Both the position numbers and the translations under genes were made by a program. The notes under the pieces are model-generated. The model searched no databases. It was not told where the DNA came from and saw only the letters and a program-made list of their open reading frames with translations. DNA of 64,000 nucleotides from Takakia lepidozioides (lineage: Eukaryota > Plantae > Bryophyta): positions 33,046,001 through 33,110,000 of the forward strand of contig CM060731.1 of assembly GCA_030704615.1 (NCBI GenBank), read 5' to 3'. This document shows, in pieces, positions 14,866 to 58,421 of the stretch (the stretch's first letter is position 1; every line of letters starts with the position of its first letter).

Positions 14866-16487
14866 GCGGACGCTAAACCGTGAGCGGTTAGCTGGAAATC
14901 ATGAGCCCATAATATAAAATTTATATGATTATAAGCATGGATGGTCGTCAAAATATTAAGAAATGGGACGTATTTTTGCCGATTATTGCAAAAATGACAA
15001 TATGAGGGTCGTTGTCCATGTTTTGTAAGAACAAAAATTAAATAAAATAAATTAAAAACCACTGTTGTCTGGTATGCGCCGGCGCATACAAAATATGAGG
15101 GCAATTGTCCCTGTTTTGTAAGACAAAAATTTAAATTATTTTTAAAAACAAATATTTTAAAAACAAAATCCCCTCTATTGTAAAATTAAAAATTAAAAAC
15201 TTTTTTAAAAATAAAAATGAAAATTTAAAAACATTGTCTTAAAACAAAATCACTGTTGTCTGATATGCGGCGCATATGAGGGCCACTGTCCCCTGTTTTG
15301 TAAAATTAAAAATTAAAAAACAATAATAAATGAAAATAAAAAATTATTAATAAAATAAAATAAAAACAAAACATTGTTGTCTCATATGCGCCAGCGCATA
15401 TGAGGGCCACTGTCCCCTGTTTTGTAGGAAAAAATTTAAAAACTTTTAAGAAAATAAAATTTTAAATTTAAAAAAAAAATTATAAAAAAACACTTGCACT
15501 GGCGCATATGAGGGCCAGTGTCCCATGTTTTCTCAGAAAAAAATAAAAAATAAAACATTGAATTTTTTTATTTAAAAAAAAAAAAAAACTGTTGCCTGAT
15601 ATGCCGCGGTGCATATGAGGGCCACTGTCCCCTGTTTTGTAAAAAATGAATTAAAAACATTTAAAAAATGAAAATTGAAACATTAATTGTTTTTTGAAAA
15701 AAACACTGTTGTCTGATATGCGCCGGCGCATACGAAATATGAGGGCCACTGTTCCTTGTTTTGTAAAAAAATTAAATTTAAAATTGTTTTTAAAAAATAT
15801 TTTTAAAACAAAAAACTGTTGTCTGGTATGCGCCGGCGTATACGAAATATGTGGGCCATTGTCCCTTGTTTTGCAAACAAAAAAAACAAAAAAAACAAAC
15901 CCATGAAATTGTTCTGAGATTCATTCATGTTGAGGTTGGCCTGCTGCACAGAAGCTCCACGACTTTGTCTTCCTACTAATTTCATCCGATCCTCTCAAAC
16001 AATCAACCTTTAGAGACATTGCCCACTTCACCTCTCTAGCGTCCGCTATCGTCCCTCCCTCCCTGGCTCTATCGGATTCTTTCCCTCTATGATTGCATAT
16101 GAATTATTGGGTGTGTACATATGGCGGGATTGCATACGTACGTACATGCACGACGTAGTCACATTCATCTACGCAGAGGGCTATTCATTCACATCCACTA
16201 TTTCATCCCGGACATCCCGGATAATGTTCCATTCAAATACAACGATATTCATCCATTTCCTAGCATGGAAGGACTTGGTACGTAAACCACGTCTAAATGG
16301 ATGAAACTGATGGATGGAATGGATGTAACAGATGTCATCTGTAATGACTGAATAGGGTTAATCAATCCGCGGAAATAGGCCCTGCAAGTTTGGAATTCCA
16401 TGTTGACGTGGCGTGAGCTTCTGCTGGGCTCACGAGCTCCTGGGCTCACATGCTCATGCCTCCAGGCTCACGGAATAGCAACCCTCA
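14866..16487. mobile_element. Non-autonomous Mutator-like element, copy 1
   Basis: Flanked by a 10-bp direct repeat CACACTGCCC (14856-14865 and 16488-16497). Degenerate TIRs GCTAAACCGTGAGC / GCTCACGGAATAGC. Subterminal CCGCGG and ATGGATGA motifs are shared with copies 2 and 3. Confidence 0.75.
15000..15875 (+). repeat. Array of about 7-8 copies of a ~60-bp GC-containing motif separated by A/T-rich spacers
   Basis: Consensus CTGTTGTCTG(A/G)TATGCGCCGGCGCATA...TATGAGGGCCACTGTCCCCTGTTTTGTA at ~15061, 15252, 15374, 15498, 15589, 15706 and 15815. Confidence 0.9.
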
Positions 16488-23893: not shown

Positions 23894-25338
23894 TGCTGTG
23901 AGTCTATGCTTTGCAAAAATCTAAAGTACACCACAAAAAAATACTTAGATTTAGAGCAAAATTCCAAGTTAGATGAATAATTTGTGAGTTTCTTGACCAT
24001 TGACAAGATAGGCACGTGACAAGGTTTTGGCCTGCCATGTGGGCGGTCAACTTGTAGGGACTCCCCCACCCAAGTCTTACCTCTCCTGAAACTCCAAACA
24101 TCTAGCAGTGCAGGTCTTCACGATGTTTGTTGGAACGTGTACAGGACAAAAGGGCCAACATTCTTCATTCAGATGTCACCTTCATCTGAGATCATCCATA
24201 GAAGATATGACATGGATGAAAAATGAAGCGACCTGTTTCGGGTCGCGTCATCGTTTTAGGGGGTCCAAGACAATTTTGTTTTTGGGCTTCACCGCAGCCA
24301 AAATGTGAGTAACTAATGGTTGACCTTGGACCGAGTTACCTAACAACTCACAAATCAAAGAAAATCCAAGCAAAAAGATAAGTATTTCAGTGCGACTTAC
24401 AAATCGAAGAAAATCCAACAAAAGTTGATAACTATTTCAGCACCAATCGTTAGTGAAACAAGCCTAAAAACGGCAATGGGCTCTCTTGCTTTGTTAAAAC
24501 ATAAGAGGAAGGTGAGAGTGAGGGACATGACTCAGCACAACACACCAATCTTAGCCTTGGCACACTGTGTCCTTTGACCACATTTTTTCCATTGACCTGA
24601 ACATGTTGGGTAGTCACTCTCTACAAGACAGCCAACAACCTAAACACTATTTAAAGACAAAATATGTTCATACCTCCCAAAGAGGAGTTTTTTTTTTTTT
24701 TTTTGGGCTATTTCAACTGATGTCGGATCTGGATTCTGCATCCCAAACTTCCTTTTCGTACATTTTATTACAATAGAATCTTGAAATATGCCAACCTTAT
24801 TCGGGCAGCGACCCAGCATGGGCTTTACGTTGATAATGGATACATGTAGTCAGACACTATAACTCAAATTCATAATGGATACATGTTTTTTTTAAAACGT
24901 TTTAACAGAAGGGGATGGAGGCCCTTAAGTTAAATGATATTAAAAGGTGTCTTGGAAAAAATAACCAAGACAGGAGGCCATGAGGCATTACAGGATATAT
25001 GTCCTAGTCAGATACTGTAACTCAAACAGTTAATGAAAATTTAACCAAAAACAGTGAAATCTGCATGTTATATTTGACCCCAGAAACACCCAGCGGTTTG
25101 TATGTGCCTGATCTCTCTGCACAGGGATGTAATGTATTGTAATGTAAGAGCTGCACTGCGAATTCTCTCATAATATGGCTACATTGACAGGATAACATAA
25201 TCCATACTTGCGCTGATCCCCAAGTTCCCACCATCACACGGCCCAAGCCAACCTGCAAGCATTGCAGAAATAAGGCTCCTACTTCAGAGTGACGATGACA
25301 GGAGGCCGCAGCCCAAGGGATTCTCACAAACGCGGATT

Positions 25339-25382
25339 ATCCCATATCGATTGCCAGTATATCGGTGCCCAGAAAGTATATA
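25339..25382 (+). promoter_or_regulatory. Plant snRNA promoter: USE plus TATA box
   Basis: ATCCCATATCG (25339-25349) has 1 mismatch to the plant USE consensus RTCCCACATCG. TATATA lies at 25377-25382, about 27 nt upstream of the U1-like RNA. Confidence 0.75.
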
Positions 25383-25403
25383 GCTCTGCGGAAACGAGTA
25401 AAT

Positions 25404-25558
25404 CTACATACCTGGGCAGGGTCTATCGGTTGCCACGAAGGCTGATGTCCTAGGGCGGATCCCTTCATTGCACTTCGATTGGAACGACCCTAGCACCTAC
25501 GGGGGGCATGCACGTCGTAATTTGTGGAAGATGGGGCTCGCGTCCGCTCGGCCCTCAC
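25404..25558 (+). ncRNA. U1: U1 spliceosomal snRNA, divergent variant (or pseudogene)
   Basis: In canonical order and spacing: 5' TACATACCTGG, loop I ...CACGAAG, U1A loop ATTGCAC (25467-25473), Sm site AATTTGTGG (25519-25527), GC-rich terminal stem-loop IV. Confidence 0.88.
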
Positions 25559-25687
25559 CAGAAAACCTAAGCCTGGATATCTTCTGTGGAATCATGTAGA
25601 CGTGGAAATATGTTTTGCCGGATAACGGCGTATCTAAGAAGTGCTTGAATAGTCACTTTGCACGTCCAATGCCAACCACTCACAGCA

Positions 25688-26300
25688 GTTGAGAGCTCAG
25701 TTGTATTGCGATGAGTGTCACCCAGGTGATTCTGGGCTCAAATCCTGTTGCCTTGTCGGGTGTGGTATAATCTTCTCCCTAAACTGGACATCCCTATTCT
25801 TCTCCTCGTAGTGAGTTGGTCGGGGTGTTCCCATATTGAAAACATTAAGAAACAACAAAAAGTCACGTTCACTAAAAATCATACTGAAAGCATTGCTAAG
25901 TCGGAATCTTGCACTATCCACGAAAAATGTCCACAAACTACCGGCAGACTCACTTCCCGACAAGATTGGGTCGTCATCCCCCCGTACGCGTTGGTTGCTC
26001 AACACGGCGGCACTACCCTACGCGGCATCCTATGTCGCCGCCACGACCGTCCTTAGTTGTTATGTTTTTCGTCATTTACGTTAACAAGTAATTATATCTA
26101 TATATTTGTAAATTGTAATAGTAACCTAATTGCTTCCAATAAAAGCTGGTCAACACAACTCGAAGTAAGGCCCTTTAATGTACGAGCCATAGAGCGTACG
26201 ACAGACTGAATTTGAAGCAGAACTATCACCACGCACTGCAGCAGAATTTGAGCCCGGGATGATCTGGGTGCCACGCAACGCACCACCAACCGAGCTACCG
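25688..26300. mobile_element. Pair of related tRNA-like (SINE-head) sequences in inverted, convergent orientation
   Basis: Plus strand 25688-25785: AGCTCAGTTG...CACCCAG...GGGCTCAAATCC. Minus strand 26300-26208: TAGCTCGGTTGG...CACCCAG...GGGCTCAAATTC. Confidence 0.6.
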
Positions 26301-36054: not shown

Positions 36055-37859
36055 TGTGGATGGGATCTTAAATTAGTCTTCTCAAGTCAATATTCACATT
36101 TCTTCACAGCCAGTCATGGGCTGTGAAGATCCTGACCAAATGCAAGGCCCTGTGTCATCCTTCGTACAAGTCACCTCATGTGGGTTTGTAAATAAAGCTC
36201 CACAGGACTTCATCATGGTTCTAGCGATCATTGTCTGTCTCCAATTTGTGGCCATACCGGACAATTAAACTGTGTGATACTTTCCAAAACTACAGTGGTC
36301 GCGAGACAGTGGAGACCGGCTGTGGGTCCATGTGGTGGACCTGGAAATCTCAGCTCATAACAAACTCTTGGTCCTCAAGTTTGCTTGTGTGAAAGGGGGA
36401 TGTCTTTAAACCTACCATCGACAGATTGACAGATTTACTTGTCAAAACGTGTGTGCAACGAGCGAGCTACAGGGAGCTGGCTGGTCATTAACATAAGAGA
36501 TTTGGAGATACAAACTGGCAAGGCTTGCATGTAATTCCATGCCATTCCAGATTCTGGGTATTTCTTGCAGCACGCAGGATTTCGACCCCAGGCAAGGCCT
36601 TTCAACTGTCATACTCAGTATGCTCTCTGAATTCCAACACTGTGGATCAAAATACTGAATACTGGGACGAGCAAGCAAATCCTCAATGAGCGAGATTTGA
36701 ACGAGCACTGGGTTATAATACAACCACTAATCCCGCCAGCCATAGCTTCTCTATCTTTTTTTTTTTTTTTTTTTGAGCTTCTCTATCACAGACTAAGAAA
36801 ACTGGATTTGAAGACTGGAAAAACAAAAGAAAGTTGATATCTTATTCACACTGCTCCACAACAGTCCTTCCACACAGTCCTTTGCAGCAAACCGGCGTCG
36901 AGACGCTGCAAGGAAGTTAAACTGTTCCAGACACAGTCCATGTTATGAACCCTGGTTAATGGTTATGATCCAATAAGCCAGTGACAACTTGGTAGACCGG
37001 TGGTTACGTAGGCTGCCCTCTTAGTTATTTAGCAGTGGACCTCTTCATGGTTCTTTTCTCCACGGCTCCTCATTTTAATATGAGAACGGTTGATGGTCGT
37101 GGCTTGGTCATAGGAAGCTGCGCTTAAAACTCTGGCTCCTTAGCTGCACCCTGGTGGTTTTCACAGACCAATCCACAGTCTCCAGACTACAGGCATTAAT
37201 AGTTCACACAGCAGTCCTTTGGATTGAGGGGCAGTTGAATCCTCCTTGGGTGAAAGGAAAGCTAGCTGCTGCCATGGCACGAGGTCGGACAAAGTGTGGT
37301 GAGGGCACCTTCTTCTACCACACCTTTATGCATGTTTTGTCCTCTTATCAGACTCATCCCTACTGGGTTTTGGAAGTTAGCTTGTTGGATGTATCTAAGG
37401 TGGTTCAGCGAATTTTTGACATGTCACTGCCAGTGGAGTTGCAGACAAATGTTCGAAAACCGAAAATAGAGATGAGGGAAAGCTTTGGAAGGATTTTTCG
37501 AACCCCAGTGGGTGGTGGGACAATAGAGGCAGAAAGGTGAATGCCTGTCAAGTTACAACACAAGCAAAAGCACATACCATGATGCATCGAAAAAGGTTTC
37601 GTGCAAATTGTCATCCTCCCTCTCTCCCTAACACTTTTACACAGCAATTTAAGCATAAAAACTAGTGTGTGGGTGTTTGCTTAGCAAAATTTGGGATAGC
37701 TGAAGGAGGAAGGATGGAGTGTGGGTGCAGACGCATCTGGGAGCCAAGCTCAAGAGAACCAATGAGGCACTCTGGATTCACAACTACGAGAAACCTGTAT
37801 GGGTAGATGATCAACTGGTGGCAGCAGCGGTCCAGCTTACTGCATCAGACACCTCCACC

Positions 37860-40034
37860 ATGACCACTGCTTCTGAAAGAGGACCAAGAGGCGGAGTCCA
37901 CAAGATCTCCTCTGGCACCTGTGAGCATGTGAGGACACTATGTGAGGCAGGACAGCTGCAAGAGGCTCTGCTCGTCTTGAACGAAGGAGGCATTCCAGCA
38001 GACTCCAAAACTTATATCTGTCTCTTGCACAAGTGCATCAAGATGAAAGGCTTAGCAGCAGGAAAGCAGGTGCACACTCACATCATCCGAAGTGGATTTA
38101 AGCCAAATGTGTTTCTACACAACACCCTTGTCAACATGTATGTCAAGTGTGGGAGCATTGGAGATGCACACAGAGTGTTTGCCAACATGCCTGAACGAAA
38201 TTTGTTTTCATGGACTATAATGATGGCAGGATACACCAAGCATGGGTGTGGTAGGAATGCCTTGGAGACCTATGAGCAGATGATACGGGAAGGAGTGACA
38301 CCCGACCAGGTCACCTTCATTTGCGCTCTCAAAGCATGTGCCAGCCTGGCAGCCCTGGACAAGGGCAAAGAGGTCCATGTTGAGATCATGAAAGCTCGAA
38401 TAGTACCAAATATCATTTTGGACACTGCCCTTGTGGACATGTATGCCAAATGTGGGAGCATCAAGGATGCAAAGGGAGTCTTCGATGCCATGGTCAAACA
38501 AAATGTGGTCTCATGGAGTGCAATGATCACAGGATATACCCAGCATGGGAGGGGGATGGAGGCTTTGGAGACCTATGAGCAAATGATACACAAGGGTGTG
38601 AAGCCCGACCAGGTCACTTTCATTTGCATTCTCAAAGCATGTGCCAACCTGGCAGCCCTGGAAAAGGGCAAGCAGGTCCATGCTGACATCATGCAAGCTG
38701 GAATTGTACCAAATATCAATTTGGATACTACCCTCGTGGACATGTATGCCAAATGTGGGAGCATCAAGGATGCAAAGGGAGTGTTTGACAGTATGGCTAA
38801 ACGAGGTGTGGTTTCATGGAGTGCAATGATCGCAGGATATGCCCAGCATGGGTATGGGCTGGAGGCTTTGGAGATCTATGAGCAGATGATACGGGAAGGG
38901 GTGAAGCCCAACCAGGTCACTTTCGTTTGCATTTGCAATGCATGTGCCAGCCTGGCAGCCCTGGAAAAGGGCAAAGAGGTCCATGCTGACATCATGAAAG
39001 CTGGAATTGAGCCAAATATCATCTTGGACACTTCCCTCATTGACATGTATGCCAAATGCGGGAGTATCAAGGATGCAAAGGGAGTGTTTGACAACATGGC
39101 TGAACGAGATGTGGTGTCATCAAATGCAATGATCGCAGGATATGTTCAGCATGGTTATCACAGGGAGGCCCTGCAACTACTTGAAGAAATGCAAAAGGAA
39201 GGCTTGAAGCCGGACAATATCACCTTTATATGTGTTCTCTCTGCATGTAGCCATGGGTGCCTAGTTGTTGAAGGCAGACACTACATTGATTCCATGAGTG
39301 AAGACCATGGCCTCACTCCTACAGTGGAGCACTTCGGCTGCATGGTGGACCTTCTTGGTCGTGCAGGGCAATTGGATGAGGCAGAGGACTTCATTAACAA
39401 AATGCCAATCAAACCAGATGCTGTGGTGTGGAAGGCCTTGCTTGGTGCTTGCAGAATTTATGGCAATGTGGAGGTGGCAGAACGTGCAGCAAAATCTATT
39501 CTCCAGTGGGACCGACAGGACCCTGCGACTTATGTGTTGCTGTCAAACATCTATGCTGCAGCTGGCAGGTGGGATGATACTGCAAAGGTGAGAAAAATGA
39601 TGAAGGTCAGAGGTGTCAGGAAGGAGCCAGGTCGTTCCTGCATTGAGGTCGGGAACGGGGTGCACACATTTGTGGCCGATGACAAATTGCATCCGCAAAT
39701 TGAGGAAATCCATGCTGAGCTGAGAAGATTGTTTGGGCAGATGAGGAAGGCAGGGTATATGCCTGACACACGCCTTGTATTGCATGATGTGGAGGAGGAG
39801 CAAAAGGAAAGTTCTCTTTGCTACCATAGTGAGAAGCTGGCCATTGCTTTCGGGCTGATGAGCACAGCGCCTGGGATGCCTCTCCGTGTCATAAAGAACC
39901 TTCGGGTGTGTGGCGACTGCCACATGGCCACCAAGTTCATCTCAAAGATTGTTGGGCGATCAATTGTTGTACGGGATGCCAACCGCTTCCACCACTTCAA
40001 AGACGGGGTTTGTTCTTGTGGGGAGTACTGGTGA
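37860..40034 (+). CDS. PLS-class PPR protein with E1-E2-DYW deaminase domain ending EYW (organellar C-to-U editing factor); start uncertain
   Basis: Intronless P-L-S triplets, KEPGRSCIEV, GYMPDT, HSEKLA, CGDCH, RFHHFKDGVCSCGEYW*. First in-frame ATG is at 37860. Confidence 0.95.
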   Translation: MTTASERGPRGGVHKISSGTCEHVRTLCEAGQLQEALLVLNEGGIPADSKTYICLLHKCIKMKGLAAGKQVHTHIIRSGFKPNVFLHNTLVNMYVKCGSIGDAHRVFANMPERNLFSWTIMMAGYTKHGCGRNALETYEQMIREGVTPDQVTFICALKACASLAALDKGKEVHVEIMKARIVPNIILDTALVDMYAKCGSIKDAKGVFDAMVKQNVVSWSAMITGYTQHGRGMEALETYEQMIHKGVKPDQVTFICILKACANLAALEKGKQVHADIMQAGIVPNINLDTTLVDMYAKCGSIKDAKGVFDSMAKRGVVSWSAMIAGYAQHGYGLEALEIYEQMIREGVKPNQVTFVCICNACASLAALEKGKEVHADIMKAGIEPNIILDTSLIDMYAKCGSIKDAKGVFDNMAERDVVSSNAMIAGYVQHGYHREALQLLEEMQKEGLKPDNITFICVLSACSHGCLVVEGRHYIDSMSEDHGLTPTVEHFGCMVDLLGRAGQLDEAEDFINKMPIKPDAVVWKALLGACRIYGNVEVAERAAKSILQWDRQDPATYVLLSNIYAAAGRWDDTAKVRKMMKVRGVRKEPGRSCIEVGNGVHTFVADDKLHPQIEEIHAELRRLFGQMRKAGYMPDTRLVLHDVEEEQKESSLCYHSEKLAIAFGLMSTAPGMPLRVIKNLRVCGDCHMATKFISKIVGRSIVVRDANRFHHFKDGVCSCGEYW

Positions 40035-41025: not shown

Positions 41026-42948
41026 AATGATCCCCTTTCGCTGGCGACAGGGGGTCATTGTCAATCTATACAAGAAGGGTGACAGAGAAGAACTGGGGAA
41101 CTACCGTGGCATCACGCTCCTCAATGCTGTTGGCAAGACATTCTGCAGAGTTATAAGTACTCGTCTCGAGGTTGATCTGGAGTCTAGAGGTTGTTTCCAC
41201 GAAGGCCAAGCTGGCTTTCGGCGAAACAGGGGCTGTGTGGATCATATCTTCACTCTAAGCCAGATTATCCAGGGAAGGAAAAAAGAAGGGAAACTTATGT
41301 CTTTTTCCTGGATGTCAAAAAGGCTTATGACACAGTGTGGAGAGATGGCCTATGGTTCCGCCTCTGGTCTTGTGGGATCAAGGGAAAGATGTGGAGAGTT
41401 GTCCACAACTTGTATGCTCACACCAAAAGCTGTGTCACTGTTAACAGACAGAAGTCCAACTTCTTTGACATAGAACAAGGTGTAGCTCAAGGTTGTACTC
41501 TCTCCCCTCTGCTCTTCAATGTTTTCATCAATCAACTCCTCGAGGATGTGGAAAGTGAGGGATTTGGGTTAAGGGTGGGTGATACCACCATACCAGCCCT
41601 TATGTTTGCGGATGAGTTCGCAGGCATAGGGGAGACTCCAACCAATCTCCAGGAGTTGATTGATTGCGCGAAGAGATACTTTGATCTTTGGGGGCTAGAG
41701 GCTAATGTCAGCAAATGTGCAGTGGTAGCATTCAACGACAGAGGAGAGGGAGGAAGTGATCTTAAGTGGCAGTGGGGTAGCCAAGAGATCCCGGTCCTCC
41801 CTTCCTACACTTACCTGGGCGTTGAGTTCTCCTCCAATTGTAATTGGGATGCACATATCCGGAAAGTTGTTCAAACTGGCAAGGCAAAGCTCTGGGGCTC
41901 ACTAAATTTTTCCACTGCAGAGGGGTCAACTCTGAGGTTAAGAAAACCATGCTTTGTCGCGTTATTAGACCTGCCTTGGAGTACGGATCTGCTATATGGG
42001 TTGATAACTCCAACCAGCTAAGTCTCTAGAATCCATTCAAGTGGGGGTGCTTAAGGAGTGTATGTCAGCATGCTCCAAAACAGCAATGTGGCTGTTCGGG
42101 GTGAGTTTGGCATTCCATCCTTAAGCTCCCGACGAGATGAATTCAGGTCAGATGGTGGAGTCAGCTGCAACATATGCCCAACACCAGATATCCTAAGTTA
42201 ATCGACTCTATATCTTGGAAACAGGACCGCCCTGTCAAACAGGCTAAGTCCTGGCAGAAGAGAGTAGAAGAGATTCTCAAGGATCTGGACCTGGATCCGC
42301 AAGTCTTGACCCTGCTGGATATATCTGACTTAGAGGCTGTAGTGTCCTCAGCCATGTCTGTTGCCATGAGATTGTCTGATGAAAATGAAGTTAGGCAGAA
42401 ACTTCCCTGAACTTGTTTCGTCTGTGACATGGGGGAGGACATCTTGGATGACCTCAAGGGTCTACCCACTCTCGGCACTAGACTGAAATTTAAACTCAGG
42501 GCAGGAAGCCTACCTTTGAACAGCAAAACAGAAGCAGAGAGGAAAGGGAGAGTGCAATTGCCCGTGTGTGGGGCAATCTGAAGACAGTATTCATTTTCTG
42601 ATACACTGTCCGGGGTTCTCTCACCAAAGAGACGCTCTCTTCAAATCTATTAAGGGAATTGTGCCTGTACCCCTGTTCACCAACTTTGAAAGTCTCGAGG
42701 CTGAGCCAAAAGCCCAGGCCCTCCTGAGGCCTAGTTTTTGGGCAAATCACACACAGCAGATTGATGCTTGTGTGAAGGGATTTCTAGAGGATATCTGGAA
42801 AACCCGGATTAATTCTTTATATGGAGATAAGTCTTACTACCAACGTCAGCCCCTGACAGAGGTAGGTTCTGTCCCTTTTGTTCCCGCTCAAACTGGGCGC
42901 GGGGTCAATGGCCACAAGGCTACGGCAAACAACGTCTTATGAGTACAA
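41026..42948 (+). mobile_element. 5'-truncated, decayed non-LTR retrotransposon (RT + C-terminal Zn knuckle)
   Basis: NYRGITLL, QAGFR, FLDVKKAYDTVWR, GVAQGCTLSPLLFN, FADE (at the YADD position), YLGV, CPVC...HFLIHC. Several frameshifts. Candidate 7-bp TSD TCTTTGA (41019-41025 and 42949-42955). Confidence 0.9.
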
Positions 42949-43873: not shown

Positions 43874-46800
43874 TCATTGACCACACATTGTGGGGTTATT
43901 CTCATTCCCGCTCTTCCTCAGCCACACTGAATCGGCAACCTCCCCAGTGATACTCTCTCCTGCTTCAGCAACATCAGAAGCAGCTAAGAAAGTGGGCCCC
44001 CATGTAGGCGTGCCATTTTCATAGGCATTGTGGGTGAGCCGTTGCATCTCAGTTCCGTCAGCTTTGCTCACAAAAATCTCACCGTATGGCTGAAATTGGT
44101 GGGGCATTGAGATAGGTTCAGCAGACAGTCCTGCAAGGTCTGATGTGAAGACAATGCTTTTCGAGTCGGGACTAAACCAGGGGTGATTCACACGGCCCTC
44201 ATCACCACCAAGGACCCTATGCAGTCCCGTCCCATCAGGATGAACATAGTAGAGAGCAAAGTTGCCTTCACCTGCAAGGGGCATCTGGACTTTGAGTGCA
44301 TAATACTTCTCAAAATCTCTCTCTTCCAAACTAAGTGCAGGGTCTATTGCCACAAGGCTACAGCAAACAACGTCTTGAGAGTACATTCTCTCTCTCTCTC
44401 TCTCTAAATCTGTTCTACCCAAACTGGGTGTGGGTTCTATGGCCACAAGGCTGGCAAACATCTTACGCGTACATTCTCTCGCGTGTCCCTTTGACCTTTT
44501 GGCCGGCATCCCTCAGTTGTAAGAAACTTTGCTCTCACTCTCTGACACGTCTGACAAATTCTGCGTCCTCCCTCTTGCCGGAGAGTCAAGATTCTAATGC
44601 CTTAAACTGGACAATCAAGTAATTCACAAGTTTCAGAATCTCAGCCGCATTACAATCTTGTGGAAAGCATATATCCATACTCACAGCTTGACGAATCAAA
44701 GCCACCGGACATTTTCTTTTACTAAAATCTTTGGTTTGGCAATGAGTCATGAAGCTGCCCATCCGACTGGACACGAAATCTCCCCTAGGTAATTCTATCA
44801 TTGCTGAACACAAGAGATAGAATATCCCCCCACCTGGTGGTGTCCCCCCAACGTGATTGTGTCTGTCAGAACAAAATGCAATCCAGCGATTATCAGGTGA
44901 CCAGTTGGGCATGGTATCTGACCAAGCCCCTTCTGTCAATTGTCGCAGGTATTTCCCCTCTCCTTCAGCAGCATCCATGATGTACAGGTTTTTACGCCCT
45001 GAACGGCCAGATCGGAAGACAATAAACTTGCCATCAGGTGAAAGAGCTGGAAATGCGTTGTTCAAGGTGCCTTCCTTGGTTAATGTCTTCACAGTGGACC
45101 TGCTGTCATTGGCCTCGTGATCAGCAACCTCTGCATTGTTGATGGCAATTATGTGTACAGTCTTGTCCTCTGAAGCAAAAAAGGGACCACAGCTTGTGTA
45201 AAGTACACCCTTCTTTACCGGGTCCCACACAATTCCAAATACCTGTGCATCAAAGACTTTTCTTTTGCCTGTTCCATCCAGCTTCATCACATAGATGCCA
45301 GGGCTCAACCTTTCCCTCACAGGAACATAAGCTATCAGAGAACCATCTGGAGAGATTGCAGGGAATGCACCACACACATGAAGAAGAGATACATGTGATA
45401 GTGGTGACCATATGAACTCCACATAAGGTTGTTGATAGGGAGTGGAAGGTACACCCCTCTTAATCTCACTTGACTCCCTAATCTGTCGGCATCTGTGGTA
45501 CCCTACTCTCTCCGAGTTTGGAAAGACAAGGGGTTTAAGTGGTGTGCATGGGAAGTGACCAGCTCTGTGAGCTTGGTAAAATTCTTGCTCTCCAGATCAA
45601 AAATCTCAATATGGCGGAAATCGAAGTTGGGACGACGAGTAGCGACAGCAATCCATCTGCCTGTTCGCGAAGCTGCTGGCGTGAAGGCATGTAAGCCTGG
45701 TGGTGTGACCCTCTCAGCTCCGCTGGGACCTACAATACAGCAATCCATTTCAATACCTACTTGTAAGACTGGGTTTGCAGTGTGCTCGACGTTTCAAAGC
45801 AATGTTTCTTCAATTCAATCCTCATAAGTTCAAACACTTGCAAACCTTCTGCAGAGAGAGTGACTTTGAAGATGCTCACACACCATCGTCAGCTAGCCTG
45901 TGGAAATAGACAGTGGCGTCATCCGCCCAGGAAGGCCAACCGCCATTTTTCACCACCAAGCGCCGCTGCGAGCCATCGATGGCGCTCAGCATGTAGAGAT
46001 CAAGACACAGACTTTCAATCTCTCCTTTCCAGCCCCGTCCTTGATTGGATGCTACCATCACCAACTTACCTGCAAGACATTTCCCAAACTTGATCTGGCT
46101 TCAATGGAACATGGTCTGACTTTCCTCTAGCGGTAAGCCCTCCCACAATTATGAGGGTACCTGCGACAAACACATAAAAGAAAGGATTCTACCCTGTACT
46201 GTTAGGACTTGATGGGTGGCCATATGGCATATGATGTATGAGCAACTCTCCCCGTCAGGGGGTCAAGGTATATAATTTACTGTATGCGGAAAGCCCTGTT
46301 GTCTATGCTTTGAAGAGGCACTTCTCTGCACCACCCTCAATTCATTTAGCAACATTTGCAGCCTTCAACCATATACACACATGCTTACCTGAGGGTGAAA
46401 CAGAAGGATGAAGTCCGTCACTCCCTGTGGTGTGAGTCGATTTGTAACTCCCGTCTTGAGATCAGTAGCAAATACTGCATTCCAACTTTGCCGAGGACTG
46501 CCCAAAGCATCCTGTGAAGACACATACACCACTCTGCCCCCCGCTACAGAGGGCCGGTCCCTGAGGCATACTTTTGGGGTCCTAAAGAGAGCCCCCAACT
46601 GAATGGGTGTTGTCCCTGTCTCTTCAACACCTGTGAGGCAGCGGGAAGAAGTACAACTGCTGTAAATTAAATAGATGTAGATGTCTTGACACAGCAAAGA
46701 GCAGAAAGTTTCACTAATAGATCGAACTATAATTGGTCTACTAAAGATCCGCAGAGGGATTAAGCAGAATTGGTAGTTTCGACAAGTGGGATTGTGGAAA

Positions 46801-51002: not shown

Positions 51003-53972
51003 TCACCAATAATCCCCACAAGAACATGCCCCATTCTTGAAGTGATGAAAGCGATTGGCATCCCTTGCAACAATTTCTCGCCTGACGATCTTTGAGATGA
51101 ACTTGGTGGCAGTGTGGCAATCACCACATATCCTAAGGTTCTTGCTGATACGAATAACTGTCCCTGGGGCAGTGCTGATGAGGCCAAAAGCAATGGCCAG
51201 CTTTTCACTGTGGTGGCAGAGAGCCTGTTCCTTTGTCTGCTGATCCACATTGTGCAAGACAAAATGTGTATCCGGCACATATCCCAACTCCTTCATCTGC
51301 CTAGACAATCTCTCCAACTCAGCATAAATTTCATCTGTTTGTGGGTGTAGTCTGTCTTCTGTAACAAATGTATGCACCCTGTTCTGGATCTCAATACGCG
51401 TGTGTCCTGGTTCCTTTTTCACACCCCTCACCTCCACCACTTTTCTGACCTTTGATACATCATCCCACCTGCCAGCAGCAGCATAGATGTTTGAAAGCTG
51501 CACATATGCCGCAGCATTTTGTGGATCTAACTCAAGAAGATGTCCTGCAGCATATTCGGCTATATCTACATTGCCATGGATTCTGCAGGCCGCAAGCAAT
51601 GCCCCCCACACTGGAACATCTGGTTCAAATGGCATTTTCTTTGTAAAGTCCTCTGCATCATCCAAGTACCCTGCCCGACCAAGAAGGTCGACAACGCAGG
51701 CATAGTGCTCTGGTGTTGGTGTGATGTCATGATCTCCACTCATGGAACAGAAGTACTGACAGCCTTCATCTACTAGGCCCACATAACTACATGCAGAAAG
51801 AACACCAATAAATGTGACATTGTCTGGCTTCACCCCTTCCCATTGCATCTGTTCAAACAGTTGGAGGGCCTGCTTGCCATGACCATGCTGGGCATACCCT
51901 AGAATCATTGTGTTCCATGACACGACATCTCTCTTGTTGATTCTGTCAAACACTTGTCTGGCATCCCCCACACTCCCACATTTGGCATACATGTCAACAA
52001 GTGCGTTTCCTACCCGGATATCTGACTGCAATTGACATCCCATGATGTGGGCATGAATCCACTTGCCCTCTTCCAGGGCTGCTTGGCTGGCACATGCTTT
52101 GAGGATGCTAATAAAAGTGACAGCATTTGGCTTCATGCCTTCTTGTAGCATCTGCTGGAAAAGGTTAAATGCCTCGGTACCATGTCCTTGCTGAGCTAAA
52201 CCTGCCATCAGGGCATTCCACGAGATTACATCTCTTTCCGGCATTTTATCAAACACTTGGCCAGCATCCACGAAACTCCCACACTTGCAGTACATGCTCA
52301 CAAGGGCATTTCCCACCCGTACATCTGAGTTAAATCCAGCTCTGACTATGCCTGCATGGAGCACCTTGCCCTGTTCTAGAGTCACTGGGCTGGCGCGGGC
52401 ATTGAGGATGCTTGTGAAAGTTATCTTGTTTGGTTTCATGGCTTCTCGTTGCATTTGCTGAAAGAGTTCAAATGCCTCTTCGCCATGTCCTTGCTGGGCG
52501 GATCCTGCAATCATCGCATTCCATGATACCACATCTCGCTTAAGCATTTTGTAAAATACTTGGCGTGCATCCACCACACTCCCGCATTTGCAATACATGC
52601 TGATCAGGGCAGTCCCAACTCGAACATCGGACTCAAATCCGGCTTGGATAATGTCCGAATGGAGCCGTTTGCCCTGTTCCAGAGCTGCTGGGCTGGTACA
52701 GGAGTTCAGTATGCTTATGAAGGTGATCTTGTTTGGCTTCACACCTTCTCGTTGCATATGCTGGAAAACTTCAAAGGCCTCCGTAGTATGCCCTTCCCAA
52801 CCCAGTCCTGCGATCATCACAGTCCACGAGATCACATCTCGCTTGCGCATTTTGTCAAAGACTGTCCGCGCATCCACTACACTACCACACTTGCAGTACA
52901 TGCTAACAAGGGCATTCTCCACCCGGGCATCTGAGTCAAATCCAGCCTTGATTATGGCCGCATGAAGCCGCTTGCCCTTTTCAAGTACTACTGGGCTGAC
53001 ACATGCGTTGAGAATGATCGTGAAAGTCACGTTGTTAGGTTGTAAGCCTTCTCGTTGCATTTGCTGCAACAATTCAAACGCCTCTTCGCCAAGCCCTTGC
53101 TGAACAAGTCCTGCTATCATTGAATTCCATAAGACTACATCCTGCTTAGGCATTTCAGTAAACAATCGGCGAGCCTCTGCCACGCTCCCGCACCTTCCAT
53201 ACATGCTAACGAGTGCAGTACCCAGTCGAACATCTGACCCAAATCCAGCTTCACTGACGCTGGCGTGGATCTGTCTGCCCTGTTCCAGAGCAGCTGGACT
53301 GACACATGCATTGAGGATACTTAAGAAGGTGATCTTATCTGGCTTTACGCCTTGAAGTTGCATTTCCTGAAAGAGTTCAATTGCCTCTTCACCATGCCGT
53401 TGCTGCGCCAACCCTGCAATCATCGCATTCCACGATATCACATTGCGTTGGGGCACTTCATCAAACACTCGGCGCGCATCAACAACACTCCCGCATTTGC
53501 AATACATGGTAATAAGGGTGTTCCCGAGTAAAGTGTCTGACCCAAATCCACTTTTGATGATGTGGGCATGGACCTCCCTGCAGAATGCCAAGTCTTTTGT
53601 CCGAGCACAATCCTGCAAGAGACTAACACACGCATCAGAATATACCGCAAAGCCTTGCTGCTCCGCCACATCCAGAATGTGCACTTGCTCGTTCAATCGT
53701 CCCTCTTTGCACACTATGCTCTCATGCCTGATTTCCTTTCCCCCTCCGCTTACTCTTCGTCCGTTAGAGGCAGTGGTCACAGTTGCCGTGCAGACATCCA
53801 TATCTTTGCCCAGACGCTGATGCCCAACAAACAAACCAGTCTGATTCCACAACTGAAACCCCCAGCCCTTGCATGGTAATAAAATGTCCCCAGAGCACAA
53901 GGCAACTGAGGGTTCAGTATGGAGAAACGCAATGTGGATCATTTTGCTCACATTGCAGGCAGAGAGATGCAA
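51003..53972 (-). CDS. PLS-class PPR-E1-E2-DYW protein (organellar C-to-U editing factor)
   Basis: 989-aa intronless ORF with about six P-L-S triplets, [29 protein letters not shown]. Confidence 0.96.
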
Positions 53973-57087: not shown

Positions 57088-57426
57088 CGCTCTTGCTCTC
57101 TCTAACCCTACAGCGCAAGGACGGCCAGAGCAGAAGCGAAAGAAGCAGAGCGAGAGCGGGAGAGCCTGAAAACTCAAGAGAGAAGAAAGGCTGCGAACGA
57201 CGACGCTTCCAAGGCCCTCCGTGTCCCAAAATATCCCTGCTCACTCCACGTGGCCACATCTCATCCGTTCGTCCACATCTCATCCATCCAAGTTAACACT
57301 TAGGCTTAGGGTTTCCTGAGAGCGCCGTCGGCCGTAGCTCTGTCTGTCTGTCTGTCTGCCTCTCTCTCTCTCTCTCTGTGCGTGAAGGATCCTTGTCCCA
57401 GCAATCGAGCTTTATACAATCCAGCT
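57088..57426. promoter_or_regulatory. Compact bidirectional promoter between the GRP and RPS2 genes, with G-box and telo box
   Basis: The ATGs are 340 bp apart. CCACGTGG at 57246-57253, TAGGGTTT at 57307-57314, CT-rich tracts in both leaders. Confidence 0.65.
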
Positions 57427-58421
57427 ATGGCGGAAAGAGGAGGAGAAAGAGGTGGAGGTGAGAGGGGCGGGTTCGGGCGGGGATTTGGTCGGGGCGACCG
57501 TGGAGGGCGTGGAGACAGAGGGCGGGGCGATCGCAGGGGTGGGCGTCGGGGGCCCAAGCGGGAGGAGGAGGAGAAATGGGTGCCTGTGACCAAGCTGGGA
57601 CGGCTGGTGAAGGATGGGAAAATTAAGTCTCTAGAGCAGATTTATCTGTTTTCGCTTCCCATCAAAGAACATCAGATCGTGGAGTTTTTTCTGGGGGCTG
57701 CCTTGAAGGATGAGGTGATGAAAATCATGCCCGTGCAGAAGCAGACTCGGGCTGGACAGCGGACTAGGTTCAAGGCGTTTGTGGTTGTGGGGGATAGTAA
57801 TGGGCATGTTGGTCTTGGAGTTAAGTGCAGCAAGGAGGTGGCCACGGCCATCCGAGGGGCAATTATCTTGGCGAAGCTGTCTGTAATCCCTGTGCGGAGA
57901 GGCTACTGGGGTAACAAGATTGGGAAACCGCATACGGTGCCCTGCAAGGTGACTGGGAAGTGTGGCTCCGTGACTGTGAGGCTGGTTCCTGCCCCTCGAG
58001 GGTCAGGGATCGTGGCTGCCCGCGTGCCCAAGAAGGTGCTGCAGTTTGCAGGCATCGACGATGTATTCACGTCTTCTCGGGGATCCACCAAGACGCTTGG
58101 CAACTTTGTGAAGGTAGTTTTTCTTTCTGACCTACTGTCTGTGGCATGTTTTGGTTTCCGAAGCTTCAATTTGCAAGGAAGATTAGGTTCTGGTGTAAAT
58201 AGTTTGATGCTGAATTGTATATTCGCCCCTTTTGACTGTTGTCGGCATTTATCATGCAGGCCACGTTCGAGTGCTTGTTGGAAACCTATGGATTTTTGAC
58301 CCCTGACTTGTGGCGAGAGACACGCTTCACCAAGTCTCCATTCCAAGAGTTCACTGACTTCCTGGCGAAACCTCACAAGATTAGCGTGCTGGAGGATGTG
58401 GAGAAGACCCCTGTCTACTGA
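57427..58421 (+). CDS. RPS2: 40S ribosomal protein S2 (uS5), 2 exons (57427-58113, 58260-58421)
   Basis: RGG-rich N-terminus, [46 protein letters not shown]|ATF...[20 protein letters not shown]. Confidence 0.97.

Follow-up and report, generated by a model that had tools for sequence, protein, structure and literature searches.

Variant U1 genes have been described in humans, where some are transcribed and where all of them together account for <0.1% of cellular U1 (PMC8457000). In these human RNAs U1-70K associates poorly where G28U is present, alterations of the U1-70K site accompany poor snRNP assembly and low Sm occupancy, and damage to stem IV accompanies a short half-life (PMC8457000). 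Arabidopsis has 14 U1 genes, of which about 10 are active and 87% identical and about 4 are putative pseudogenes, the latter recognised because they are little similar to the rest, lack signals or fail to fold (PMC545797). That U1 can be redirected to a mutant donor by a complementary base change in its arm is an established principle (Zhuang and Weiner 1986, as cited in PMC8457000). The arm itself reportedly does not vary between yeast and human (PMC4383343).

Here we report on a natural plant U1 copy with an altered arm, located in a 64-kb stretch of DNA that is referred to throughout as the window. We give a probability of about 0.6 to the reading that this copy is a DNA-duplicated, single-copy and strongly diverged U1 paralogue of the variant-U1 or U1-pseudogene class, relaxed or decaying and giving rise to at most a rare, unstable RNA. 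Both the arm and a protein-binding loop are altered and the copy is a minority beside many U1 copies, as is characteristic of that class. An earlier note on this DNA had favoured a specialised U1 instead of random decay, and its claims are taken up below where the evidence bears on them.

The window was searched with cmscan, and one Rfam family was matched, U1 (RF00003), at 25404-25558 on the plus strand, scoring 84.6 bits where the gathering score is 69.5 (E 1.7e-19) and covering model positions 1-166, the full length. Nine other plant U1 genes reach 102-136 bits on the Rfam score, compared with the 84.6 bits of this copy. A permissive Rfam scan of the window (E up to 1) returned nothing relevant beyond U1, and a tRNA search of the 64 kb returned none. 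U11 or another RNA family was rejected for 25404-25558, as there was no competing Rfam match. A MIR530-like match at 15368-15524 (26.5 bits where the gathering score is 85; E 0.88) is almost certainly due to chance. According to the Rfam alignment and a hand-built structure, the landmarks of the locus follow the order of a U1 gene:

25339-25349, plus strand: USE ATCCCATATCG, the only exact match to TCCCAYATCG in the 64-kb window
25350-25376, plus strand: USE-TATA spacer of 27 bp, compared with 32-34 bp in eight angiosperm U1 genes
25377-25383, plus strand: TATA box TATATAG, first base at -27 of Rfam position 1
25404-25558, plus strand: variant U1 snRNA coding region, full-length match to the RF00003 model (84.6 bits)
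25404-25414, plus strand: 5' splice-site recognition arm CUACAUACCUG (DNA CTACATACCTG), with C1 and A5 in the Rfam alignment
25419-25451, plus strand: stem-loop I, loop UGCCACGAAG (DNA TGCCACGAAG) at 25431-25440
25452-25491, plus strand: stem-loop II, 11 base pairs, U1A-type loop AUUGCACUUC at 25467-25476
25493-25511, plus strand: stem-loop III, short and weak, 6 pairs interrupted by a 2-nt bulge (-2.5 kcal/mol)
25519-25527, plus strand: Sm site AAUUUGUGG (DNA AATTTGTGG), from the sequence and the Rfam alignment
25533-25555, plus strand: stem-loop IV, C-U mismatch in the upper stem, UCCG loop (TCCG at 25543-25546)
25563-25577, plus strand: downstream box AAACCTAAGCCTGGA, a putative signal for processing of the 3' end, 13/15 to the flanks of other U1 copies at the same distance

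The earlier note had placed all U1 landmarks in order at 25404-25558, and the Rfam match has identical coordinates. The changed arm and loop I, the short stem-loop III and the UCCG loop of stem-loop IV that it described are all present in the sequence, and the stem pairs it quoted (AUCGGU/GCUGAU; UAGGG/CCCUA) exist. Likewise, the U1A loop, Sm site, USE and TATA box, which it had given as retained, are in place: the loop motif AUUGCAC is exact (7/7, ATTGCAC from 25467), and so is the Sm site AAUUUGUGG (9/9). Stem-loop III carries a 4-nt and a 2-nt deletion relative to the Rfam model, on both strands of the stem. The window copy is confirmed as a real U1 homologue with these sequence changes.

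The clear genes of the window are largely intronless. Two intronless PPR-DYW editing-factor genes are found at 37719-40034 (plus strand) and 51003-53972 (minus strand), with best matches elsewhere that are 50-58% identical (Diphasiastrum, Ginkgo, Calypogeia, Ceratodon). Both are long and encode DYW deaminase domains, which marks the host as a land plant, one rich in DYW-type PPR genes; an exact-protein look-up of one PPR ORF gave no match. Additionally, there are a reverse-transcriptase fragment at 41191-42021 (plus strand), a PD40 beta-propeller gene fragment at 44586-45422 (minus strand) and a gene for ribosomal protein uS5 (S2) with an unusually long first exon at 57382-58299 (plus strand).

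At model positions 1 and 5 the arm CUACAUACCUG has C and A (the latter called A5 here), in contrast to the canonical invariant arm AUACUUACCU. In computed duplex energies the window arm pairs with CAG|GUAUGU at -11.8 kcal/mol and with CAG|GUAAGU at -7.4 kcal/mol, and the canonical arm gives the mirror image, with -7.8 and -11.6 kcal/mol, respectively. This bears out the earlier proposal that A5 moves the pairing preference from GUAAGU to GUAUGU. The GTATG sites which the same note had put forward as donors, at 1069, 5369 and minus-strand ~7950, are real pentamers, but no more than candidate donors. As raw counts over both strands, which are not donor counts, the window contains 152 GTATG, 162 GTGAG and 90 GTAAG; counted in the same way, there are 12 AGGTATG and 6 AGGTAAG.

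The preference inverted by about 4 kcal/mol, together with the USE, TATA box, Sm site, U1A loop and downstream box that were kept, argues for a specialised functional U1, made by Pol II and assembled as an Sm-class snRNP, whose A5 arm picks +4U (GUAUGU) donors while U1-70K binding is perhaps altered or absent. The identity of the +4 base also matters for the later handling of 5' splice sites by U6 in Arabidopsis (PMC9803359), and legumes conserve A5 U1 genes with perfect folds and normal promoters at syntenic loci, as described below. We nevertheless consider a specialised U1 unlikely here, for the window copy is single, has C as its first aligned base and has lost the loop I contacts, the fold stability and the Pol II spacing that the legume A5 genes have, A5 being all that it shares with that clade.

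The start of the RNA is uncertain, because the base aligned to position 1 is a C. From the usual TATA distance and the rule of a purine start, transcription is likely to begin at A25406 (ACAUACCUGG...) or A25408 (AUACCUGG...) rather than at C25404. A start at A25408 would leave an arm with four bases fewer, and little would then remain of the A5 reading. As this argument is built on promoter spacing judged against angiosperm genes, it serves as a warning rather than proof.

Loop I reads UGCCACGAAG compared with the canonical U1-70K site GAUCANGAAG, the equivalents of G28, A29 and U30 having become U, G and C while the seven other loop bases are retained. In the U1 structure, a flipped-out G28 is stacked between the U1-70K residues Arg172 and Tyr112, the loop is closed by a pair of A29 and A36, and U30 packs against Leu175 and bonds Asp177 (PMC4383343). 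The alteration of the U1-70K site seen by the earlier note is therefore located on the contact bases themselves.

The promoter elements are present, as the earlier note had stated, but they lie 27 bp apart, where Pol II snRNA genes typically have 32-34 bp. In Arabidopsis a spacer of 32-34 bp specifies Pol II and one of 23-24 bp Pol III (PMC8287931), and the window copy fits neither class, being 5-7 bp short of the Pol II range. The USE lies at -64 of model position 1, compared with -72 to -74 in eight plant U1 genes, about one helical turn closer, and the first TATA base lies at -27, compared with -29 to -32; these eight genes were taken from metagenomes and are angiosperm, so that the baseline may not be the norm of the host species. 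Around the USE, at 25336-25355, the DNA contigs include at least one further U1 copy of the species with a likeness of 80% or more.

The downstream box changes an earlier statement that there was no clear 3' box. Two of the three recovered downstream flanks of other U1 copies share a short box 5-6 nt past the coding end, and the box of the window copy agrees with that of one family of copies at 13/15 positions, in surroundings without similarity. No match to CA(N)3-10AGTNNAA, the consensus given for the 3' box of angiosperms (PMC5079582), lies behind the window copy. Since a species-typical downstream element is retained, even though it is off the angiosperm consensus, the statement needs to be softened.

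The spacing also bears on a change of polymerase, in which the locus would be near Pol III geometry and make a re-purposed, U1-derived RNA, uncapped, 3'-extended to TTTT at 25613-25616 and with a non-splicing role or none. The distance from USE to gene points that way, being 10 bp below that of the eight plant U1 genes of Pol II type, as spacing decides polymerase choice in Arabidopsis (PMC8287931). A length of 27 bp, however, falls outside both the 23-24 and the 32-34 class, the downstream box common to the other U1 copies favours Pol II-type 3' processing, and nothing else suggests a new function; we hold a polymerase switch to be highly improbable.

A USE-like site with one mismatch, TCCCATATTG, is located at 25829-25838, 270 nt downstream of the U1 copy, and is without a TATA box. 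U1-U4 tandems with a spacing like that between the U1 copy and this site occur in Arabidopsis. With 4.9 such sites expected per window, the site is probably due to chance, and a second snRNA gene behind it was rejected, there being no Rfam match at E up to 1.

The fold was evaluated in silico, with protein stabilisation not counted in the energies. The plain MFE fold of the 155 nt is a non-U1 structure with z = 0.74, which is not decisive alone, and constrained and domain-wise folds were therefore compared with those of ten other U1s. The canonical U1 structure, hand-built with standard pairs only, has -31.8 kcal/mol compared with -50.5 kcal/mol for the MFE, which is about 19 kcal/mol worse. 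By domain it gives -6.9 (stem-loop I), -10.4 (stem-loop II), -2.5 (stem-loop III) and -6.8 kcal/mol (stem-loop IV), and stem-loop II, whose own MFE is the expected hairpin at -10.4 kcal/mol, is the sole fully sound domain. When the region from the arm to the Sm site of eleven U1s was folded alone, the four-way junction was the plain MFE in all eight plant metagenome U1s, and the same region of the window copy gave an unrelated long-range fold, not the cloverleaf. Stem-loop IV of the window copy has -10.5 kcal/mol compared with -13.8 to -18.9 kcal/mol in the ten other U1s, with a C-U mismatch in its upper stem where other U1s have C-G, and helix H is weakened as well.

Copy number was assessed with contigs of four DNA-type and two RNA-type runs of the same organism, aligned to 25330-25620 at 80% likeness. 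The interval 25330-25495, which spans the promoter and runs 92 nt into the gene, is covered by own-locus contigs only, at depths of 28 and 57, and is therefore single copy. Single-copy status, which had been named beforehand as speaking against specialisation, is thus what is seen at 80% likeness over 25330-25495. Over 25496-25558, which comprises the end of stem-loop III, the Sm site and stem-loop IV, many other contigs align with 5-8 differences per 59 nt, to summed depths of about 750 versus 28 and about 1100 versus 57, and from these depths we estimate some 20-27 copy-equivalents of other U1 genes in the genome. The two RNA-type runs contain no contig on any U1, even over the part shared by all copies, and are therefore silent on expression.

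The other U1 copies are 86-91% alike to the window copy in the 3' third and under 80% elsewhere; they are known from 30-nt loose contig ends and from this shared third, their 5' halves lying outside the data. They have four extra bases in stem-loop III compared with the window copy. In the loose contig ends, 7 of the 15 positions of the 3' strand of stem-loop II differ between the commonest other copy and the window copy, and the 11 base pairs that form in the window copy despite these differences imply that this stem underwent compensatory change at some point in the past.

As the 5' halves of the other 20-27 or so copies, at ~74-79% identity, fall below the 80% cut-off, A5 might be the norm of the species, with all or most U1 genes of the host carrying it, and high-scoring A5 U1s do occur in some metagenome eukaryotes (L008, 152 bits). 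We hold a species-wide A5 to be highly improbable: the arm is reported invariant from yeast to human (PMC4383343), the legume A5 genes sit beside U5 genes, and the defects of loop I and of the fold would be left unexplained. Furthermore, in a control scan of GTDB bacterial and archaeal bins we found six contaminating eukaryotic U1s, on animal-derived contigs that did not look human and were used for the 5' read-out only, and 6/6 read CATACTTACCTGG.

A5-type U1 genes elsewhere were collected by scanning metagenomes for ACATACCTGG and then for loop I and loop II motifs, which yielded 14 loci, 11 of which hold U1 genes with A5 according to Rfam. Because the scan was A5-selected by design, it says nothing on the frequency of A5. 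Six loci, with five distinct sequences, are plant A5 U1 genes with the arm ACAUACCUGG:

L001:10191-10348 (the same sequence as L009:7727-7884)
L004:6944-7100
L010:561-717
L006:1691-1850
L007:956-1121

In all six, the USE and loop I (GAUCAAGAAG) are canonical, the spacer measures 32-34 bp and the RNA folds cleanly into a cloverleaf. L001 and L009 are cowpea, a neighbouring HSP20 ORF being 100% identical to Vigna unguiculata, and L004 and L010 come from related plants and are syntenic, sharing a GDSL lipase gene and having flanks that are 80-87% identical. In L001/L009, L004 and L010 a second U1 (TCACTTACCTGG) is located 0.5-1.3 kb upstream of the A5-type gene, and within each legume species the A5 and U5 genes are alike in stem-loops II and III. 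Of the 46 pairs predicted for the eight plant U1 genes, 16 have changed on both sides and still pair. Judged from these comparisons, A5-type U1 genes are evidently maintained under structural constraint in phaseoloid legumes, and because they are kept at syntenic loci with compensatory changes, an A5 U1 is maintainable in plants. A literature search found no description of A5-type plant U1 genes, and the variant arm string led to unrelated primers only.

Among the other loci, L008:3717-3882 is a U1 gene of a metagenome eukaryote (152 bits, arm AUACAUACCUGG). It is accompanied by a U2 gene (906-1097), a histone 3' stem-loop (1974-2019) and a partial U1 (1-112), which looks like a tandem U2-histone-U1 repeat unit; since the gene sits in this apparent repeat, A5 may be the main U1 of that organism. 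An identical GC-rich U1 (72.6 bits, AUACAUACCUGG) was found in four metagenome samples, at L002:2236-2401, L005:4999-5164, L012:1021-1186 and L013:1234-1399.

The comparison with the legume genes gives no support to one ancient A5 clade that includes the window copy, which shares A5 alone and no other derived character with them. A wider proposal, in which A5 U1s are a recurrent, selectively maintained minor class of land plants and the window copy is a diverged but working non-seed-plant member whose snRNP favours +4U (GUAUGU) donors and meets U1-70K through a re-modelled interface, we regard as distinctly unlikely.

The relaxed or decaying paralogue described at the outset draws on evidence of two kinds. 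An exact USE, Sm site and U1A loop, a downstream box at 13/15 and a well-paired stem-loop II count toward long-term constraint, and motifs are better preserved than expected under uniform decay, given that no similarity to other copies is left in the flanks. Toward a loss of function count the five changed key positions, the fold, stem-loop IV and helix H, the spacer, the non-purine start and the single copy. The claim of the earlier note, that the copy is specialised rather than randomly decayed, is contradicted by the single copy, the fold, stem-loop IV and helix H, the spacer and the non-purine start, and a pseudogene, which that note had left as a possibility, is the more likely option compared with a specialised U1.

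We accordingly envisage an old U1 paralogue that would have worked during much of its existence and has since become relaxed or started to decay. Its USE, TATA box, downstream box, Sm site and loop II motif may still allow transcription and the binding of Sm proteins and U1A, while changes have gathered at positions that working U1s keep, namely C1, A5 and three U1-70K contacts, in addition to the upper-stem mismatch of stem-loop IV, the weak helix H, the truncated stem-loop III and a spacer that is 5-7 bp short. Any RNA made would presumably start at a shifted purine, A25406 or A25408, fold poorly into the U1 cloverleaf and bind U1-70K weakly, and because of this poor fold and weak binding it would be rare or unstable, like most human variant U1s, and would not be dedicated to donors of the GUAUG class. 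Anatomy, copy number and computed fold of the window copy are direct readings, from which we infer its transcription, stability and protein binding.

Should the copy prove functional and its arm re-targeted, it would represent natural splice-site tuning by an snRNA paralogue in plants and would tie in with the handling of the +4 position by U6. As it stands, the locus illustrates that an intact-looking USE and TATA box with preserved Sm and U1A motifs are insufficient to call a variant snRNA functional in its host genome. The more useful lead is provided by the legume A5-type U1 genes with their compensatory changes, in which the idea of a specialised U1 is directly testable.

Compared with known systems, the window copy resembles the legume A5 U1 genes (L001/L009, L004, L010 and L006; also L007) in being a plant U1 with USE, TATA box and an A5 arm, but it is without their canonical loop I, 32-34 bp spacer, cloverleaf MFE, GDSL-lipase synteny and compensatory stems. 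With the human variant U1s (vU1, derived from RNU1 pseudogenes) it shares G28U and the damage to the U1-70K site and stem IV, whereas those genes have a DSE/PSE promoter instead of the plant USE/TATA. The Arabidopsis U1 family is likewise multi-copy and unusually divergent, with USE and TATA promoters; compared with its pseudogenes, the window copy has signals that are present but mis-spaced, the 5' arm itself is altered and the host is a non-angiosperm-like land plant. Engineered suppressor U1s follow the same A5/+4U logic and are otherwise wild-type with strong promoters, while the window copy is natural and carries many further changes.
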